A stretch of 64,000 nucleotides of DNA from Heteronotia binoei (taxonomy: Eukaryota), in contig NC_083223.1 of the NCBI RefSeq assembly GCF_032191835.1, positions 221,154,001 to 221,218,000 on the forward strand. The letters run 5' to 3'. The notes beneath the pieces were generated by a model. It made no database searches and was not told the origin of the DNA. It saw only the letters and a program-made list of their open reading frames with translations. Shown here piece by piece: positions 7,935 through 63,825 of the stretch. The first letter of the stretch is position 1. The number at the start of each line of letters is the position of its first letter. The translations under genes were made by a program, and so were the position numbers.

Positions 7935-8080
7935 TTAGAACATAAGAACATAAGAGAAGCCATGTTGGATCAGGCCAATGGCCCATCCAGTTCAACACTC
8001 TGTGTCACACAGTGACCAATACACACACACACACACTGTGGCTAATAGCCACTGATGGACCTCCGCTCCATATTTTTGCT
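7935..8080 (-). mobile_element. CR1 extreme 3' end fragment
   Basis: cataagaacataagagaagccatgttggatcaggcc... near-identical to the other CR1 tails. Confidence 0.9.
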
Positions 8081-13724: not shown

Positions 13725-14085
13725 GGTGGCCCACCTATGGTCACTTTGCAAATTCAAGGAATATAAAAGCAAGGGGAATGTAGGACTTCTGCAAAATCTC
13801 AAATGGGGTCTAAGGAACAGGAGGGTGTGACAGACAGAAGGCTGTCCCACCCCTGAAGGGGAAAACAGCCACTCACATATGGCAGTGCTATTCCAGCAGT
13901 CACCTTTGACAAGGGGGATTGAATGTTGGAGGGAAACACAGCAAGAGTTCAGTTCAGATCTGCCTCAGAAAGAGTGCAGAGGGAGTTGAGTTTTCTGCCT
14001 CAGGTAGAGAGCAGTGAGAACTCAGGTCTAGCTCAAGAGGCAAGCAGAGTGAAGGGTAGCTCTGGCAGAGTGGTTTGGCTCTACT

Positions 14086-14169
14086 TAAGAACATAAGAGA
14101 AGCCATGTTGGATCAGGCCAAACGCCCATCCAGTCTAACACTCTGTGTCACACAGTGGCCAAAAAAATT

Positions 14170-29512: not shown

Positions 29513-29676
29513 NNNNNNNNNNNNNNNNNNNNNNNNNNNNNNNNNNNNNNNNNNNNNNNNNNNNNNNNNNNNNNNNNNNNNNNNNNNNNNNNNNNNNNNN
29601 NNNNNNNNNNNNNNNNNNNNNNNNNNNNNNNNNNNNNNNNNNNNNNNNNNNNNNNNNNNNNNNNNNNNNNNNNNNN
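29513..29676. other. Assembly gap (164 N)
   Basis: Run of N. Confidence 1.
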
Positions 29677-30943: not shown

Positions 30944-33860
30944 ATGTCTCTGGTTTGGGAGGACTCGTCTCAAAGAGATGAAGGGTTGGCTGCTATTTTT
31001 CTACCGGGTAACGGACCAGAGTTGTCCACTGTGAAGGTGACAAACAGTATGGACTGTCTGCCAGAGTCTCGAGGCGGCAGGAGGAAGGTGGCGGGCCTAG
31101 CTTGCCTGCGAAATTATAGATGTTTGTATGCAAATGCTAGAAGTGTTCGAAGTAAAATTGGTGAATTGGAATGTTTAGTGTTGGGAGAAAACATAGACAT
31201 TGTGGGAATTTCAGAAACTTGGTGGAATGGGACACGGTGATTCCTGGATATAAGCTATATCGGAAGGATAGGGAGGGAAGGGTTGGAGGTGGGGTGGCTC
31301 TGTATGTCAGAGAGGATATACGGTCCAGTAAGACTGAGGTCAAAGAATTAGATTCACTTTTAGAAATGCTTTGGGTTGAAATAGAGGGCCCAAAAGGAAA
31401 TTTAACTACGGGAGTTTGTTATCGCCCACCAAATCAAAAGAGAGAGGACGATTATAATATAATAGCTTAAAGATAGCGGCTAAACATAAAAACTGTGTCG
31501 TAATAGGTGATTTTAACTACCCGCAGATTGATTGGGTCAATATGTTTTCTGGTCGAGAGAAAGAGATTGAGTTTCTTGATGCTCTCAATGACTGTGCTAT
31601 GGAGCAGATGGTCTCAGAACCTACCAGGGGTGGGGCGATCCTGGATTTGGTCCTAAGTAATGCCCAAGACTTGATGAGAGATGTAAAAGTGATTGCGCCA
31701 CTTGGGAGCAGTGACCATAATGTTATTGATTTCACCGTTTGTATAAATAGGGAGTTATTCAAAAAGACCGCCACAACCATGTTTAACTTTAAAAGGGGTA
31801 AATACACTGAGATGAGGAGGCATGTGAGGAGGAAACTGAAAGGAAAGGTACATACGGTCAAAACCCTTGGGGAAGCTTGGACACTATTTAAAACTATAAT
31901 CCTAGAAGCTCAGATAAAATACATACCACAAGTTAGGAACGGCACAAACTGGCATAAGAAAAGGCCTGCATGGTTAACAAACAAAGTGATGGAAGCTGTA
32001 AAAGGTAAGAAGGACTCCTTTAAGCGGTGGAAAACCAGTCCAAGTGAGATTAGTAAAAGGGAACACAGGCTGTGGCAAATCAAATGCAAGACTGTGATCA
32101 GGCAGGCAAAAAGGGACTATGAGGAGCATATTGCAAAAAACATAAAGACCAACAATAAAAATTTCTTCAAATATATTAGAAGTAGGAAACCAGCCAGGGA
32201 GGCAGTGGGGCCCTTGGATGACCTTGGGGTAAAAGGATTACTGAAGGAGGATAGGGAAATGGCTGAGAAGCTAAATGAATTTTTTGCCTCCGTCTTCACT
32301 GTGGAAGACAAGAACTTTTTGCCCGCCCCAGAACCACTAATTTTGGAAGGGGTGTTGAAAGACCTGAGTCAGATTGAGGTGACAAAAGAGGAGGTCCTAC
32401 AACTGATAGACAAATTAAAAACTAATAAGTCACCGGGTCCGGATGGCATACATCCGAGAGTTCTGAAAGAACTCAAAGTTGAACTTGTGGATCTTCTAAC
32501 AAAAATCTGTAATCTTTCATTGAAATCTGCCTCCGTTCCTGAGGACTGGAAGGTAGCAAATGTCACCCCCATCTTTAAAAAGGGTTCCAGAGGAGATCCG
32601 GGAAATTACAGGCCAGTCAGTCTGACTTCAATACCGGGAAAGTTGGTAGAAACCATTATCAAGGACAGAATGAGTAGGCACACTGATGAACACGGGTTAT
32701 TGAGGAAGACCCAGCATGGGTTCTGCAAGGGAAGATCTTGCCTCACTAACCTGCTACATTTCTTTGAGGGGGTGAGCAAACATGTGGACAAAGGAGACCC
32801 GATAGATGTTGTTTACCTTGACTTCCAGAAAGCTTTTGATAAAGTTCCTCATCAAAGGCTCCTTAGAAAGCTTGAGAGTCATGGAGTAAAAGGACAGGTC
32901 CTCTTGTGGATCAAAAACTGGCTGAGTAATAGGAAGCAGAGAGTGAGTATAAATGGGCAGTCTTCGCAGTGGAGGACGGTAAGCAGTGGGATGCCGCAGG
33001 GCTCGGTACTGGGTCCCATGCTCTTTAACTTGTTCATAAATGATTTAGAGTTGGGAGTGAGCAGTGAAGTGGCCAAGTTGGCCAAGATGACACTAAATAG
33101 TTCAGGGTGGTGAGAACCAGAGAGGATTGTGAGGAACTCCAAAGGGATCTGTTGAGGCTGGGTGAGTGGGCGTCAACGTGGCAGATGCGGTTCAATGTGG
33201 CCAAGTGCAAAGTAATGCACATTGGGGCCAAGAATCCCAGCTACAAATACAAGTTGATGGGGTGTGAACTGGCAGAGACTGACCAAGAGAGAGATCTTGG
33301 GGTCGTGGTAGATAACTCACTGAAAATGTCAAGACAGTGTGCGTCTGCAATAAAAAAGGCCAACGCCATGCTGGGAATTATCAGGAAGGGAATTGAAAAC
33401 AAATCAGCCAGTATCATAATGCCCCTGTATAAATCGATGGTGCGGTCTCATTTGGAGTACTGTGTGCAGTTCTGGTCGCCGCACCTCAAAAAGGATATTA
33501 TAGCATTGGAGAAAGTCCAGAGAAGGGCAACTAGAATGATTAAAGGGCTGGAGCACTTTCCCTATGAAGAAAGGTTGAAATGCTTGGGACTCTTTAGCTT
33601 GGAGAAACGTCGACTGCGGGGTGACATGATAGAGGTTTACAAGATAATGCATGGGATGGAGAAAGTAGAGAACTCGTGGGCATTCGATGAAATTGCTGAG
33701 CAGACAGGTTAAAACGGATAAAAGGAAGTACTTCTTCACCCAAAGGGTGATTAACATGTGGAATTCACTGCCACAGGAGGTGGTGGCGGCCACAAGTATA
33801 GCCACCTTCAAGAGGGGTTTAGATAAAAATATGGAGCACAGGTCCATCAGTGGCTATTAG
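30944..33860 (+). pseudogene. CR1 ORF2 (endonuclease + reverse transcriptase), frameshifted
   Basis: YANARS, ISETWW, GDFNYP, SPGPDG, YRPVSLTS, QGSVLGP motifs; frameshifts near 31235, 31465, 33085 and a deletion near 33670 relative to the 62.5-kb copy. Confidence 0.95.
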
Positions 33861-33967
33861 CCACAGTGTGTGTGTATATATAAAAATTTTTGCCACTGTG
33901 TGACACAGAATGTTGGACTGGATGGGCCGTTGGCCTGATCCAACATGGCTTCTCTTATGTTCTTATG

Positions 33968-46880: not shown

Positions 46881-47031
46881 NNNNNNNNNNNNNNNNNNNN
46901 NNNNNNNNNNNNNNNNNNNNNNNNNNNNNNNNNNNNNNNNNNNNNNNNNNNNNNNNNNNNNNNNNNNNNNNNNNNNNNNNNNNNNNNNNNNNNNNNNNNN
47001 NNNNNNNNNNNNNNNNNNNNNNNNNNNNNNN
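46881..47031. other. Assembly gap (151 N) overlapping a TTBK1 exon end
   Basis: Run of N. Confidence 1.
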
Positions 47032-51208: not shown

Positions 51209-52829
51209 GATGTTCCACCAGGCTTTTGATTGAGAACAGCGATGGTTTCCATCTGACACCCTCCTCTACTATTTACACCTATCTTGCCCTCCTACCCACA
51301 GCCCGTGAATGTGGCCAGCAATTGGAACTGGGATCACTTATTATTTGCCATCTGACTGTTAAAATATCCTATTAATGGTCTTAACTGTTTTTTATCTTAT
51401 TGTTTTACATATTCTGTACATCCCTTCAGTAGTAGGGATTGGGTAATAATACTGCCTGCTGGTAAATCCTTTAGTCTAAGCAGTTTTTTCACTGCCTGAA
51501 GACTGTGCTAGTTCTACTGATCCTGATTCCTCCTGGCAATATGATCTTATTCCAAGACTCTTCTCTGGACCATCTTGAGGACTCCTAACTTCTGGCGGGA
51601 CCCACTTCTGCCACACTCTATGGACTCATTGGCTGTCTCTGATTCTCTGGCTACCTAATCCTTGGCTTGACTTTTGATTCTTCCATCCTGCCTGATGCAA
51701 CTATTCCCAAGCTTTTTTTTTTTAAGCCACAACCACATATTTATTTATGTATTTATCCTCTGTCTTTTTTTCCAGTGGAGCAACACTTTAAAACTGGTCT
51801 AGGGAGAGGGGTGGGATGGCCATGGTGACATCAGCTAACAAATGCTATACACAACAGCTGGTTTGTCTTGCAAATCTGCAGAACATTTTTTCCTTTGAGC
51901 TTGGCCAGAGGAGGAAAGTTATGTATGAACTCAGTGTGATGAAGCCGCTTCCCAACCGGCTGCAGTGCTTTACAAACATTATGTTTGTCTTCGCCCAAGA
52001 AGTTAAATCTCAGGGATGGGCAAAAAGGCAGATGGATCTAGTACAAATCCTTACAGATGAGCATTAAGGTGCCATCTAGTGTAAAGCCTGCTATATAATG
52101 CAGGTAGTTAGATTCATTTTGAACAGGGAACTGCCCTATAAACATATCACACAGAAGGCTAAACCCAGCTTTCAGAGATGTGTAATAGTGAGGGGAGAGG
52201 CAGAAAATGATCCTATGAGCAAGAATAGAGGTATTTCAAGTACACATATATTTCAAGGCTGTCCCTATTTTCATCTGTTAAAACCCTATTTTCATCTGTA
52301 AACTGTCAGCAATATGCTATTCTTCAGAGTACTATTTTGTGATGCAATTCAACCCCTTTCACAAATTGTCAGCCTCCACAACAAAGATAGTGTTATCTTA
52401 CAACAAGAATTTTACCATCACAGACAGTACAATGTGTATTGGGCCAGTACAATCAAAATCCAGGGGGAAAATGTAATATGAATTGTGGAATATCTCTGTT
52501 TCTTAGACTTGAAAATATTATCTCTGTCTTCCCTAGGTCCTTTTCCACATATAGACTAAAATCTGATAGGTCTTAGGGTGGCCAGACCGTCCCGGTCTCC
52601 CGGGACATTCCCGGTTCTGGCCACCCAATCCCGGCTCCCGGGCTGCCTATACCGGGACCATTAAAGGTCCCGGTTTAGCCAGCCCCGGAGGCGGTGGGCC
52701 GCGAGCGCCGGGGAGGAAGGCGGCGAGTGAGGGAGGGAGCATCCCTGCGCCTGCGCAGGGCCCCTGCGCACGCGCAGGGACGCTCCCTCCCTCACTCGCC
52801 GCCTTCCCCGCCCGCGCGCGGGGCCGGCA

Positions 52830-53720
52830 GCGGTGGCGGAGGCCTCTCCGCGGCCTCCGCTGGTCGCTGGAAGCCCTCCAGAGTCTCTGGAGGGCCTCCA
52901 GGGACCAGCGGAGGCCGCGGGGACGCCGCGGAGCACCCGGTGCTGGTCCCGGAAGGCCTTCCAGAGCCTCTGGAAGGCCTTCCGGGACCAGCGCCGACCA
53001 GCGAAGGCCTCCCCGCGGCTTCCGCTGGTCCCTGGAGGCCCTCCAGAGTCTCTGGAGGGCCTCCAGGGACCAGTGGAGGCCGCGGGGACGCGGCGGAGCA
53101 CCCGGCGCTGGTCCCGGAAGGCCTTCCAGAGCCTCTGGAAGGCCTTCCGGGACCAGCGCCGACCAGCGAAGGCCTCCCCGCGGCCTCCGCTGGTCCCTGG
53201 AGGCCCTCCAGAGTCTCTGGAGGGCCTCCAGGGACCAGCGGAGGCCGCGGGGACGCCGCGGAGCACCCGGCGCTGGTCCCGGAAGGCCTTCCAGAGCCTC
53301 TGTAAGGCCTTCCGGGACCAGCGCCGACCAGCGAAAGCCTCCCCGCGGCCTCCGCTGGTCCCTGGAGGCCCTCCAGAGTCTCTGGAGGGCCTCCAGGGAC
53401 CAGCGGAGGCCGCGGGGACGCCGCGGAGCACCCGGCGCTGGTCCCGGAAGGCCTTCCAGAGCCTCTGGAAGGCCTTCCGGGACCAGCGCCGACCAGCGAA
53501 GGCCTCCCCGCGGCCTCCGCTGGTCCCTGGAGGCCCTCCAGAGTCTCTGGAGGGCCTCCAGGGACCAGCGGAGGCCGCGGGGGACGCCGCGGAGCACCCG
53601 GCGCTGGTCCCGGAAGGCCTTCCAGAGCCTCTGGAAGGCGTTCCGGGACCACCGCCGACCAGTGGAGGCCGCGGAGAGGCCGCAGAGCAGCCGGCGCTGG
53701 TCCCTGGAGGCCTCCAGAGG
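52830..53720. repeat. GC-rich 165-bp tandem array (~5 units), each unit two perfect palindromes
   Basis: GGAAGGCCTTCCAGAG recurs at 52951, 53116, 53281, 53446, 53612. Confidence 0.95.
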
Positions 53721-53838
53721 CCAGCGCCGGCAGCTCCCTCCCTCCCTCGCCGCGAGGCCGCCGCCGCAGGACTCGCCGCCGCCGCTGGACTCTCCGCTGC
53801 CCTGGAAGCAGGTAAGGGGGCCGAAAGCGGGGGGCGGG

Positions 53839-54203
53839 NNNNNNNNNNNNNNNNNNNNNNNNNNNNNNNNNNNNNNNNNNNNNNNNNNNNNNNNNNNNNN
53901 NNNNNNNNNNNNNNNNNNNNNNNNNNNNNNNNNNNNNNNNNNNNNNNNNNNNNNNNNNNNNNNNNNNNNNNNNNNNNNNNNNNNNNNNNNNNNNNNNNNN
54001 NNNNNNNNNNNNNNNNNNNNNNNNNNNNNNNNNNNNNNNNNNNNNNNNNNNNNNNNNNNNNNNNNNNNNNNNNNNNNNNNNNNNNNNNNNNNNNNNNNNN
54101 NNNNNNNNNNNNNNNNNNNNNNNNNNNNNNNNNNNNNNNNNNNNNNNNNNNNNNNNNNNNNNNNNNNNNNNNNNNNNNNNNNNNNNNNNNNNNNNNNNNN
54201 NNN
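53839..54203. other. Assembly gap (365 N) inside the composite hAT element
   Basis: Run of N. Confidence 1.
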
Positions 54204-55224
54204 CCTTATGTTCTTATGTGACACAGAGTGTTGGACTGGAGGGGCCACTGGCCTGATCCAACAGGGCTTCTCTTATGTTCTTATGTGACACAGAGTGTTG
54301 GACTGGAGGGGCCACTGGCCTGATGCAACAGGGCTTCTCTTATATTTTTATGTGACACAGAGTGTTGGACTGGAGGGGCCACTGGCCTGATCCAACAGGG
54401 CTTCTCTTATGTTCTTATGTGACACAGAGTGTTGGACTGGAGGGGCCACTGGCCTGATCCAACAGGGCTTCTCTTATGTTCTTATGTGACACAGAGTGTT
54501 GGACTGGAGGGGCCACTGGCCTGATGCAACAGGGCTTCTCTTATATTTTTATGTGACACAGAGTGTTGGACTGGAGGGGCCACTGGCCTGATCCAACAGG
54601 GCTTCTCTTATGTTCTTATGTGACACAGAGTGTTGGACTGGAGGGGCCACTGGCCTGATCTAACAGGGCTTGTCTTATGTTCTTATGTGACCAGAGTGGT
54701 GGAGTGGATGAGCCATTCGTCTGATGCAACAGGGCTTCTCTTATATTTTTATGTGGCACAGAGTGTTGGACTGGAGGGGCCACTGGCCTGATCCAACAGG
54801 GCTTCTCTTATGTTCTTATGTGACACAGAGTGTTGGACTGGAGGGGCCACTGGCCTGATCTAACAGGGCTTCTCTTATGTTCTTATGTGACCAGAGTGGT
54901 GGAGTGGATGAGCCATTGGTCTGATGCAACAGGGCTTCTCTTATATTTTTATGTGGCACAGAGTGTTGGACTGGAGGGGCCATTGGTCTGATGCAACAGG
55001 GCTTCTCTTATATTTTTATGTGGCACAGAGTGTTGGACTGGAGGGGCCACTGGCCTGATGCAACAGGGCTTCTCTTATATTCTTATGTTACACAGAGTGT
55101 TGGACTGGAGGGCCACTGGCCTGATGCAACAGGGCTTCTCTTATGTTCTTATGTGACGCAGAGTGTTGGACTGGATGGGCCACTGGCCTGATCCAACAGG
55201 GCTTCTCTTATGTTCTTATGTGAC
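54204..55224 (+). repeat. Tandem array of 15 x 66-67 bp units derived from the CR1 3' terminus
   Basis: Units start at 54218, 54285, 54352 ... 55153; unit GTGACACAGAGTGTTGGACTGGAGGGGCCACTGGCCTGATCCAACAGGGCTTCTCTTATGTTCTTAT aligns to the CR1 end at 33900-33966. Confidence 0.96.
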
Positions 55225-55352
55225 AATACTGACTTTGGTGGACCCAAGCACTGATTCAGTGTAAGGGAGCTTTGTGTTTGTGACTGGAGTAGATAATACT
55301 GACTTTGGTGGACCCAAGCACTGATTCAGTGTAAGGGAGCTTTGTGTTTGTG
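55225..55352. repeat. Exact 58-bp direct repeat, period 70 bp
   Basis: 55225-55282 identical to 55295-55352, separated by ACTGGAGTAGAT. Confidence 0.95.
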
Positions 55353-55362
55353 TCTTCTGGTG

Positions 55363-56270
55363 CAATTTTGTTCTCAGATCCTGTATTTACTTCATCAGTA
55401 TATGGGATAAGGCACTTTCTCAACTGTGCTGCATAATGCAGCCTATTTATTTTGTCCTGTTGGCTCTGTTGGCTCTGTCTGCGCCACCTTCATCACTTTC
55501 GGGGTGTGGATCCCCCAGTGGGGTGGTCTCGTGACTCCCTCCGCCGGCTGTTTCTGATAGCCCTGCGCCCCCTCTTTCATTTGATATGTGTCCCGTGCGG
55601 GTGCCACCCTCCCGCCGGGAGATGCCGCAAAATGAGCCCCCTTGAGGCTTATGGCAGCAGGGCTCGGGGGAAGCGAGCTAGACTGCTGTTCTTTTGAGGG
55701 GTTATAGAGTGTTTCGAGCCCGTCCCTGTGGCATCGGTCCCATCGTTGTGGGGCCCAGGGGGCCGGCGCAGCGGCACGCTGAAGCAGCCTGTCGGTCACT
55801 TCCGGGTTCCTGTCCTGCATCTCGACCTGTGTTATTAGTGACAGGCTGCTTCGGCGTGCCGCTGCGCCGGCCCCCTGGGCCCCACAACGATGGGACTGAT
55901 GCCACAGGGACGGGCTCGAAACACTCTATAACCCCTCAAAAGAACAGCAGTCTAGCTCGCTTCCCCCGAGCCCTGCCGCCATAAGTCTCAAGGGGGCTCA
56001 TTTTGCGGCATCTCCCGGCGGGAGGGTGGCACCCGCACGGGACACATATCAAATGAAAGAGGGGGCGCAGGGCTATCAGAAACAGCCAGCGGAGGGAGTC
56101 GGGAGAGCACCCCACTGGGGGATCCACACCCCGAAAGTGATGAAGGTGGCGCAGATAGAGCCAACAGAGCAAACAGGACAAAATAAATAGGCTGCATTAT
56201 GCAGCACAGTTGAGAAAGTGCCTTATCCCATATACTGATGAAGTATATACAGGATTTCAGAACAAAATTG
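55363..56270. repeat. 908-bp inverted repeat (~430-bp arms, 46-bp spacer)
   Basis: 55363-55793 is the reverse complement of 55840-56270 with only scattered mismatches. Confidence 0.96.
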
Positions 56271-57656
56271 TTTCCGGCGGTGATATTTGGGGGATTTTTG
56301 GGGATGTCACAGGAAGTGCTGTGAAGTCACTTCCTGTTCCCGGCAGTGGCATTTGGGGGAAATGATGTCATTTGGGGGAAATGATGTCACAGGAAGTGAT
56401 GTCACTTCCCATTTCCGGCAGGTGACGCGGGGAAATGATGTCACAGGAAGTGATGTCACTTCCTGTTTCCTGTGGTGGCATGCCATCACCGGAAGTGCCG
56501 TCACCGGAAGTGACGTCACTTCCTGTTTCCGACGGCGCGCGCACACCCCTACCTTCCCCCCCCCCCCAACGTGTCCCTGGCTGGCCTTCAGACATTATGG
56601 TCACCCTAATAGGTCTACTGGGACATTGTGTTGTACCTTGAACCCCTGAGTGGTCAGAACTTCCGCAATCACTTGGCCAAACCACAAAGGGTAAGAAATA
56701 CATACTCAGAGAACTACATTGTTAAAGTATTTCTGCTTCAAGGTGTTAGAGACAATCTGTCCGCCTCCCCTGGCCCCTCCAGGATATGCATTTGGTTCCT
56801 TCTGTTTCAGCTCATTTCATTATTTCACTCTTCTCAAAGGGATTTTTCCTAATTTCATACATTTGCTTCCATCTTAGGAAATATCTACATTAACCATTCT
56901 TTTTTTTTTTGCCAGATACAGAGAGAAATCTATGTTAATTAAATTCATAATATTTTATTGATTTGTTTCCTGCAACTTTTAACCCATGTTCATCAAAGCT
57001 GGTTATGTATACCCTTGTCTAATTTGCTGCTTCTACAGAGACAAACCTGCACTTACCCATACATACAATGTCCTCAGTCAGACAATGCAAACCACTGCAG
57101 TGCAGTCTGAATCACAAGGAGATAGAGCTCTAATCAATGTGCTAGAGCTGAGTTGGCAAAAACAACAGCATGCAAAGCACAATAATGCATTGCCAGCTCA
57201 TGCAAACAGGAGAAGATTGTTGTGATACAAACACAGCTTTTCCTTTGCCACTATATGCACAATAATGTGCGCAGTGACTGCACAGAATTTTCAGCAGAGA
57301 GCTTCAAGGGGCAAGTATAATAATAGCCCAAGGGTTGTTGAATTCATGAAAGAATGTAGAAGTCAGTTTTCAAACTGAAAATCAGTCTTTGCGCAGCAAG
57401 AAAATAATTACGAATGACAGTCCATTCAATTACTGGTAACAGTAAAACTATTTCTATATGCAGGTATCTATTTCAGAACACAACTGAAAGCCTAATGGCA
57501 TGGTATGACACATTACTAAACTTATCCAGGATAATAAACATTCTAAATACCTTCCAAACCAAGAGTTTACATGAAGGATTGTGTGGTGTTAATACTTATT
57601 ATATCAGATTTTTCTCAATGCAGAGATATGCAAGGTCTCCTAGCACTCTTTATCAA

Positions 57657-62522: not shown

Positions 62523-63825
62523 AACATAAGAACATAAGAGAAGCCATGTTGGATCAGGCCAACGGCCCATCCAGTCCAACACTCTGTGTCACACAGTGGC
62601 AAAAAATTTTATATACACACATACACTGTGGCTAATAGCCACTGATGGACCTGTGCTCCATATTTTTATCTAAACCCCTCTTGAAGGTGGCTATACTTGT
62701 GGCCGCCACCACCTCCTGTGGCAGTGAATTCCACATGTTAATCACCCTTTGGGTGAAGAAGTACTTCCTTTTATCCGTTTTAACCTGTCTGCTCAGCAAT
62801 TTCATCGAATGCCCACGAGTTCTTGTATTGTGAGAAAGGGAGAAAAGTACTTCTTTCTCTACTTTCTCCATCCCATGCATTATCTTGTAAACCTCTATCA
62901 TGTCACCCCGCAGTCGACATTTCTCCAAGCTAAAGAGTCCCAAGCGTTTCAACCTTTCTTCATAGGGAAAGTGCTCCAGCCCTTTAATCATTCTAGTTGC
63001 CCTTCTCTGGACTTTCTCCAATGCTATAATATCCTTTTTGAGGTGCAGCGACCAGAACTGCACACAGTACTCCAAATGAGACCGCACCATCGATTTATAC
63101 AGGGGCATTATGATACTGGCTGATTTGTTTTCAATTCCCTTCCTAATAATTCCCAGCATGGCGTTGGCCTTTTTTATTGCAAACGTACACTGTCTTGACA
63201 TTTTCAGTGAGTTATCTACCACGACCCCAAGATCTCTCTCTTGGTCAGTCTCTGCCAGTTCACACCCCATCAACTTGTATTTGTAGCTGGGATTCTTGGC
63301 CCCAATGTGCATTACTTTGCACTTGGCCACAATGAACCGCATCTGCCACATTGACACCCACTCACCCAGCCTCAACAGATCCCTTTGGAGTGCCTCACAA
63401 TCCTCTCTGGTTCTCACCACCCTGAACTATTTAGTGTCATCCGCAAACTTGGCCACTTCACTGCTCACTCCCAACTCTAAATCATTTATGAACAAGTTAA
63501 AGAGCATGGGACCCAGTACCGAGCCCTGCGGCACCCCACTGCTTACTGTCCTCCACTGCGAAGACTGCCCATTTATACTCACTCTCTGCTTCCTATTACT
63601 CAGCCAGTTTTTGATCCACAAGAGGACCTGTCCTTTTACTCCATGACTATCCAGCTTTCTAAGGAGCCTTTGATGAGGAACTTTATCAAAAGCTTTCTGG
63701 AAGTCAAGGTAAACAACATCTATCGGGTCTCCTTTGTCCACATGTTTGTTCACCCCCTCAAAGAAATGTAACAGGTTACTGAGGCAAGATCTTCCCTTGC
63801 AGAACCCATGCTGAGTCTTCCTCAA
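62523..63825 (-). mobile_element. 5'-truncated CR1 LINE, same family as 29677-33967
   Basis: RT C-terminal ORFs 63427..63825 and 62632..63420 (FADD motif); same 3' tail; flanking duplication ATTCTTAACA at 62517-62526 and 63825-63834. Confidence 0.96.

Follow-up and report, generated by a model that had tools for sequence, protein, structure and literature searches.

A probable non-autonomous hAT transposon of a multicopy family, with an interior of hairpins, minisatellites and CR1 tails

Non-autonomous hAT transposons, among them the maize Ds-type elements and the hAT and MITE elements of vertebrates, carry an 8-bp target-site duplication, short terminal inverted repeats starting with TAGGG, and subterminal repeats, and encode no transposase; they occur in many copies in different flanks and include internal-deletion forms with filler DNA. 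Tetris, Galileo and other foldback-type transposons, apparently also non-autonomous, are modular and exist in many rearranged forms; their internal tandem repeats originated within the element itself, change through unequal exchange and are able to found satellite arrays (PMC4079207). Those of Tetris are placed within terminal inverted repeats of great length. CR1-mobilised SINEs such as TguSINE1 and PittSINE combine a tRNA-derived Pol III head with a single tail made of the 3' hairpin of CR1 and an 8-bp microsatellite; this tail, the presumed recognition signal for the CR1 reverse transcriptase, forms the 3' terminus of the SINE, the site at which reverse transcription is primed (PMC5729268). 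Pack-MULE and Pack-TIR elements, in turn, hold GC-rich DNA resembling the 5' ends of genes between their transposon ends (PMC5861414).

The 4-kb element described here, at positions 52574-56608 of the 64-kb stretch of DNA that was analysed (the window), shares traits with each of these systems. It is probably a non-autonomous hAT copy belonging to a multicopy family in several related (squamate-like) genomes. Its termini, TAGGGTGGCC…GGTCACCCTA, enclose an interior of minisatellites, duplications able to fold into hairpins, and LINE tails that make up a passenger block (Table 1). All the traits listed above for non-autonomous hATs recur, but the interior is unusually large, consists almost entirely of palindromes, a hairpin with 431-nt arms and two tandem arrays, and keeps a CpG-island-like composition. 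Modularity and rearranged forms recall the foldback transposons; unlike in Tetris, the terminal repeats measure 10-11 bp, the target duplication is hAT-like, and the long inverted repeat is an interior structure placed off-centre, with 2.8 kb between its arms and the left end but 0.34 kb on the right. The hairpin and octamer microsatellite of the CR1-mobilised SINEs are found here as well, but as 15 tandem tails in the middle of a DNA transposon and with no Pol III head. Finally, gene-5'-end-like DNA lies between the ends as in Pack-type elements, whereas here it may be the element's own leader.

Table 1. Features of the element and its target site, with positions in the window; array copy numbers are as assembled.
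Feature	Positions	Strand	Basis or remark
Left target-site duplication ATAGGTCT	52566-52573	.	identical to 56609-56616
Left terminal inverted repeat TAGGGTGGCCA	52574-52584	+	10/11 against reverse complement of right end
Left subterminal region, six TCCCGG repeats	52574-52696	+	motif count; present in all four runs
GC-rich palindrome, 64-nt arms, 1-nt centre	52697-52825	.	palindrome search, folding
165-bp minisatellite, 5.1 units, 97% matches	52836-53670	.	tandem-repeat analysis
Degenerate last unit (seed), then GC-rich 5'-exon-like stretch	53671-53838	+	ends CAG/GTAAGG
Assembly gap (N), 365 N	53839-54203	.	sequence
Tandem array, 15.3 copies of 67-nt CR1 3' terminus, three-unit higher order	54204-55225	+	tandem-repeat analysis
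70-bp local duplication, TGTGAC microhomology at junctions	55226-55362	+	sequence comparison
Inverted repeat, left arm	55363-55793	+	431 nt
Inverted repeat, loop	55794-55839	.	46 nt
Inverted repeat, right arm	55840-56270	-	431 nt
Right subterminal repeats on palindrome GGAAGTGAYGTCACTTCC	56271-56545	.	motif analysis; in all four runs
Right terminal inverted repeat, TGGTCACCCTA on + strand	56598-56608	-	sequence comparison of ends
Right target-site duplication ATAGGTCT	56609-56616	.	perfect 8-bp match to left

The terminal inverted repeats of hAT transposons begin with YARNG, and their target-site consensus is nTnnnnAn. Both ends of the element fit the short-repeat YARNG start, the left reading TAGGGTGGCCA and the right, as reverse complement, TAGGGTGACCA; the duplicated ATAGGTCT has the T of the consensus at position 2 and a C at position 7. 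This combination of TAGGG-starting ends and a perfect 8-bp duplication is the sole such pair in the window, in which 0.0005 perfect pairs are expected by chance, and a scan of the 64 kb for YAGGGTG…CACCCTR pairs with 8-bp duplications found no further one. BLAST of each module against the rest of the window likewise revealed no second hAT copy within 64 kb; the CR1 tail alone recurs. Pfam detected no domain in the nine open reading frames of the element, and no part of a hAT transposase (BED finger, RNase H-like core or hAT C-terminal dimerisation domain) was found in these or in the ten longest open reading frames elsewhere in the window, as expected of a non-autonomous copy; nor did an autonomous partner come to light. 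The first-pass annotation had proposed hAT-type ends with a perfect duplication, no transposase and an ordered series of modules from the left palindrome to the palindromic repeats on the right, and each of these was recovered in its place. Metagenome and viral contig collections contained no exact match to the left terminus or to the loop of the hairpin, and the terminal motif led only to unrelated papers in the literature.

Evidence that the element is not a single-locus curiosity comes from four public runs (two or more organisms, DNA and RNA) mapped onto the locus. All four cover the element exactly from 52574 to about 56608-56611, with zero depth beyond; the unique flanks have depth 0 in every run. 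In X1 record 1 and X9 records 17 and 18, the match starts exactly at 52574 and the sequence outside is unlike the flanks of this locus. Zero flank depth, coverage of the element and contigs with other flanks together establish a multicopy family, whose other copies are known from short contigs of these runs only, none of them a full-length copy with a target-site duplication of its own. These contigs also speak to the earlier premise that the cargo may be part of the family. The 70-bp unit runs into the left hairpin arm in other copies too (join 55323-55461; in X1 record 4 over 139 nt with 0 differences), the arm and loop region is joined as here (55765-55852 and 55669-55816; the loop is spanned by X1 records 5 and 6, X9 record 23 and X3 record 13), and the right arm continues into the ETS/CRE repeats (55935-56419; X9 record 24, 486 nt). 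To judge by these joins, much of the cargo is a property of the family. The 165-bp array varies between copies: one form in X1 skips from 52825 to 53754, and single units at about 90% identity occur in X1, X3 and X9. That skip, with 25 filler letters, is one of several internal-deletion forms, the others running from 52684 to 55955 (17 filler letters), from 52746 to 55787 and from 52757 to 55804. Read depth in X1 is 16-100 times higher over the 70-bp unit and the hairpin arm than over the hAT termini, which indicates that both modules also exist outside this hAT family.

The inverted repeat totals 908 nt, and its arms are 97% complementary. At 6 of the 13 positions where the arms mismatch, the letter carried by other runs restores the pairing; only this copy has those six mismatches, which makes the hairpin a family trait that predates this insertion. 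The palindrome GGAAGTGAYGTCACTTCC to its right unites an ETS-like GGAA with a CRE-like TGACGTCA, and every palindrome is followed by GTTYCCGGC; perfect versions stand at 56392, 56446 and 56506, accompanied by two degenerate ones, and they are putative promoter or protein-binding sites. Other identities considered for these sequences were set aside. No target duplication borders the inverted repeat, which was therefore rejected as a nested MITE. An rDNA-spacer origin of the arm, which is deep in small DNA data sets, was dropped, as contigs join the arm to the hAT-specific ETS/CRE repeats and the loop. In Rfam (52000-57000, E up to 1), palindromes gave sub-threshold matches to many unrelated microRNA-hairpin models, and there was one weak pRNA match (21.7 bits against a threshold of 34); all were set aside as generic hairpin look-alikes.

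How might such an element move and grow? A transposase encoded elsewhere would cut and paste it, binding the TAGGGTGRCCA ends and probably also the subterminal repeats, among which the TCCCGG repeats are candidate binding sites. The non-coding, modular interior probably stems from post-excision repair and replication errors: shorter forms would arise by internal deletion with filler DNA, the palindromes and the hairpin with 431-nt arms have a geometry that suggests fold-back (snap-back) synthesis, and the 165-bp and 67-bp arrays could reflect slippage and unequal exchange. The CR1 tails with the 70-bp unit probably form a passenger block. Its source would be either ordinary genomic DNA captured as a CR1 3' end plus the flank downstream of it, or a truncated CR1 nested in the element, and the block was afterwards amplified as DNA into a satellite. 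What was a picture of one locus becomes a defined repeat family, represented in both DNA and RNA libraries from several related animals and characterised by hAT ends, the 431-nt-arm hairpin and promoter-like subterminal palindromes. Such elements break short-read assemblies (compare the gap here), mimic CpG islands and, as the sub-threshold Rfam matches illustrate, microRNA hairpins, can spread satellite seeds, and would record how the interiors of DNA transposons are rebuilt by post-excision repair.

The left half of the element bears on a rival account, in which its GC-rich interior, and perhaps the ETS/CRE cluster, is a host promoter, CpG island and first exon captured by a Pack-type hAT and spread genome-wide. 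Composition speaks for capture, with a GC content of 74-81% and CpG observed/expected of 0.7-0.93 (0.78 in 53671-53838), as does the exon-like stretch, which ends in a good splice donor at about 53812. ETS-plus-CRE palindromes are typical of promoters, and those on the right resemble such motifs. However, the exon-like stretch has neither an ATG nor coding similarity, no parent gene was identified, and no spliced read from it appears among the joints listed for the four runs. The same features fit a native promoter and GC-rich leader of a lost transposase gene, an arrangement that the transposase gene of maize Ac possesses. Moreover, the left interior derives from itself, having been largely self-duplicated from one short seed. 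Every 165-bp unit contains two palindromes, of 86 and 59 nt, related to each other as diverged copies. In the GC-rich palindrome at 52697-52825, whose core of about 93 nt is near-perfect and which folds as DNA at -77 kcal/mol (z -13), the arms have a 31-nt stretch in common with the exon-like piece at about 53723-53753. The palindrome and the roughly five double-palindrome units of the first-pass annotation are real structures. We consider a captured host origin of the GC-rich interior improbable, though it is the strongest of the competing accounts.

A non-autonomous hAT with a self-made interior and a passenger block also accounts for the CR1 tails better than the dual mode of movement first suggested, in which a cut-and-paste hAT would produce transcripts ending in CR1 tails that the CR1 machinery also reverse-transcribes and inserts. 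The array and the adjoining 70-bp duplication were found as that suggestion described them. Each 67-nt unit comprises a hairpin and two TTCTTATG octamers and corresponds to the genuine 3' end of CR1, as comparison with four other CR1 copies in the window shows. One CR1 copy of the window, at 31542-33967, has an open reading frame for reverse transcriptase. Authentic CR1 termini with hairpin and octamers, a CR1 with such a frame nearby and the presence of all modules in RNA libraries speak for dual movement, and the tail module may even be family-wide: the only join of a CR1 tail to hAT sequence seen outside this locus, a weak joint in X9 (55215 to 55287, shorter side 24 letters), suggests that tail concatemers might be part of the full-length form of the family and not a late passenger. 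However, the LINE-derived tails do not form the 3' terminus of the element: the last one stops at 55225, which leaves 1.38 kb between it and the right terminus at 56608. Nor was a head of known RNA type found: Rfam gave no tRNA, 7SL or 5S match in 52000-57000 (E up to 1), and no other Pol III head was seen. The array itself bears the marks of DNA-level growth. Identity is greatest between units that stand three apart; the block of units 1-3 is the same as that of units 4-6 (201 of 201 positions), and units 7-9 match units 10-12 at 193 of 200. From these three-unit block duplications we infer expansion as DNA. CpG observed/expected is 0.03 in the array, 0.0 in the 70-bp unit and 0.12-0.15 in the flanks, against 0.6-0.93 in the hAT modules that make up the rest of the element; the tail block has the CpG-poor make-up of ordinary genomic DNA, unlike the remaining element. 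RNA reads are equal on both strands and show no clusters of read ends at the array edge, no retroposed copy was seen, and the CR1-tail reads in the runs come from all CR1 copies. Dual DNA and RNA movement is accordingly very unlikely. A further version, in which a conserved full-length form with the long hairpin, the ETS/CRE cluster and CR1-tail concatemers exists and its CR1-tail transcripts are occasionally retroposed by CR1, seems to us hardly more than a slim chance; if it were true, each insertion would plant a CpG-island-like promoter, a source of dsRNA, and hence of small RNA, and a satellite seed.

The multicopy hAT reading treats the element as one continuous insertion, and the scaffold is probably correctly joined across the gap: the same 8-bp duplication on both outer flanks, together with the matching ends, argues for a correct join. 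The CR1 array borders directly on the gap and includes a 201-nt block twice without a difference, so that its true length is uncertain. The least probable reading of all is a chimera of scaffolding, in which the sequences left and right of the gap stem from separate loci or hAT copies. A 365-N gap in mid-element, a neighbouring array that is hard to assemble and 0 contigs bridging the gap in the four runs would allow it, but two unrelated copies would share an 8-bp duplication next to matching inverted ends only about once in 65,000, and the module order of each half was found independently in other runs. At the insertion point, the expected empty-site sequence reads …AAAATCTGATAGGTCTACTGGGAC….

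The element at 52574-56608 is real: a multicopy, non-autonomous hAT of modular build. Its left end is TAGGGTGGCCA and its right end the reverse complement of TAGGGTGACCA (10/11 match), and an identical 8-bp duplication, ATAGGTCT, lies on both outer sides. Among all YAGGGTG…CACCCTR pairs tested in the 64-kb window, this is the sole one with an 8-bp duplication, where 0.0005 perfect 8-bp-duplicated pairs are expected by chance, bearing out the hAT-type ends proposed in the first-pass annotation. Every module listed there was recovered between these ends, and its statement that the element lacks a transposase agrees with the absence of Pfam domains from all ORFs of the element. TCCCGG occurs six times within 100 nt of the left end, and another motif is repeated at the right end. 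The folding of the palindromes is far beyond chance (z -12 to -14 for the short ones, -70 for the long inverted repeat). The element most resembles Ds-type derivatives and Tetris-like modular elements.

Modules of the hAT element in window coordinates
Module	Position	Structure
GC-rich palindrome	52697-52825	64-nt arms, 1-nt centre
165-bp array	52836-53670	5.1 units; unit of an 86-nt and a 59-nt palindrome
N gap	53839-54203	
67-bp array (CR1 tails)	54205-55225	15.3 units
70-bp duplication	55226-55362	
Inverted repeat	55363-56270	431-nt arms, 97% complementary, 46-nt loop
GGAAGTGAYGTCACTTCC palindrome cluster (ETS/CRE repeats)	56271-56545	

The sides of the assembly gap belong to one insertion, since each has an inverted end next to the same 8-bp duplication; two unrelated copies would have an identical duplication with a chance of about 1 in 65,000. 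Because the CR1-tail array begins at the gap edge, the copy number given for it is a minimum. Other assembly gaps in the window lie at 29513-29676 and 46881-47031.

Other copies of the element were observed solely as short contigs of public runs. We compared 52300-56900 with four runs from at least two organisms: two of RNA (contigs X3, raw reads X18) and two of DNA contigs (X1, X9). In all four, depth extends from 52574 to ~56611; the left flank has none and the right flank hardly any. The match of X1 record 1 and X9 records 17 and 18 begins exactly at 52574, with unlike sequence outside; these are other loci, and the element is thus a member of a multicopy family, which may already be catalogued in Repbase or Dfam. 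That the cargo is part of the family, as first suggested, holds for the right-hand modules: the join of the 70-bp unit to the left hairpin arm recurs elsewhere (X1 record 4, 139 nt, 0 differences), as do the arm-loop-arm join (X1 records 5 and 6, X9 record 23, X3 record 13) and that of the right arm to the ETS/CRE repeats (X9 record 24, 486 nt). The 165-bp array differs in length among copies, given its thin coverage and its being skipped in one form. Four shorter forms skip 52825 to 53754 (joint carrying 25 other letters), 52684 to 55955 (17 other letters), 52746 to 55787 and 52757 to 55804; this pattern is typical of deletion derivatives that carry filler DNA. In X1, the hairpin arm (55777-56201) and the 70-bp unit region (55226-55461) are 16-100x deeper than the hAT ends; both modules therefore also occur outside the hAT family, amplified in another repeat or satellite.

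Four CR1 copies, at 7940-8009, 14083-14152, 33899-33967 and 62524-62593, have the 67-nt unit as their authentic 3' terminus; in them it is preceded by CR1 coding and untranslated sequence and followed by unrelated flanks. The unit carries a hairpin plus two TTCTTATG octamers, in agreement with descriptions of amniote CR1 (PMC8665684, PMC5729268). The copy at 31542-33967 (+) suggests that CR1 was recently active in this genome: its 523-aa reading frame is open and encodes a reverse-transcriptase domain (Pfam RVT_1, E 6e-28), and its 3' hairpin and octamer tail is complete. In the copies at 7940-8009 (-), 14083-14152 (-) and 62524-62593 (-), a microsatellite, (TG)n or (TA)n, and a T-run closely precede the last 67 nt; the hAT tandem unit begins directly after this spot. 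Within the array, the higher order is three units: units 1-3 match 4-6 at 201/201, units 7-9 match 10-12 at 193/200, and mean identity peaks at a three-unit lag (0.949 versus 0.926 at lag one). Multi-unit blocks were therefore duplicated as DNA. The microhomology TGTGAC, common to the 67-bp unit junction and the 70-bp duplication junctions, fits slippage or template switching.

Does the element also move through RNA? The first-pass annotation had raised, as a possibility if the cargo belongs to the family, cut-and-paste together with CR1-driven retroposition, a dual mode that our data leave unsupported. CR1-dependent SINEs have a tRNA-derived head, and their hairpin and microsatellite are strictly terminal, at the site of reverse-transcription priming (PMC5729268); in contrast, the last CR1 tail of the element stops 1.38 kb inside its right end, and no tRNA-derived head was found in the element. 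RNA reads fall equally on both strands, and over 52300-56900 their starts and ends do not cluster at the edge of the CR1-tail array. The 70-bp unit and ETS/CRE repeats are 5-20x deeper than the left end in X3 and X18 (RNA) but not in X9 (DNA), so some transcription of these modules is likely, the signal being assignable neither to this locus nor to one strand. A weak X9 joint of 55215 to 55287 hints that CR1-tail concatemers may be carried along by the full-length form of the family. If so, the element would seed satellites on landing, as had been proposed, which says nothing for retroposition.

Regarding the origin of the interior, CpG observed/expected is 0.6-0.93 in the left end, palindromes, 165-bp array, hairpin and ETS/CRE repeats, against 0.12-0.15 in the flanks, 0.03 in the CR1 array and 0.0 in the 70-bp unit. 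The CR1 and 70-bp block thus resembles ordinary genomic DNA, and a CR1 3' end followed by downstream flank is exactly what would be expected of a nested truncated CR1 or a captured genome piece. About 2.4 kb of the element (52574-53838 and 55363-56545) is CpG-island-like, with a GC content of 54-81%; copies of such composition are either young or escaping germline methylation. The left interior derives from the element's own sequence: a 31-nt stretch is common to the arms of the first palindrome and the GC-rich exon-like piece 3' of the 165-bp array, the two palindromes within the 165-bp unit are diverged copies of each other, and a degenerate seed unit terminates the array. At 6 of the 13 arm mismatches of the long hairpin, the letter found in other runs restores pairing; these six are substitutions private to this copy, and the inverted repeat therefore predates its insertion. 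Mechanistically, a hAT transposase encoded elsewhere would mobilise the element in trans. Palindromes may have arisen by fold-back synthesis during repair, a documented mechanism for inverted duplications in general (PMC3907307), and tandem arrays through slippage and unequal exchange, a route proposed for Tetris (PMC4079207).

Rfam searches of the element gave no match above threshold, and those below it were to unrelated microRNA hairpin models. The 86-nt palindromes (53013-53581) score 54-56 bits against mir-1258 (threshold 74), with lower scores to many unrelated microRNA models on both strands, and are a likely cause of false microRNA calls in annotation.
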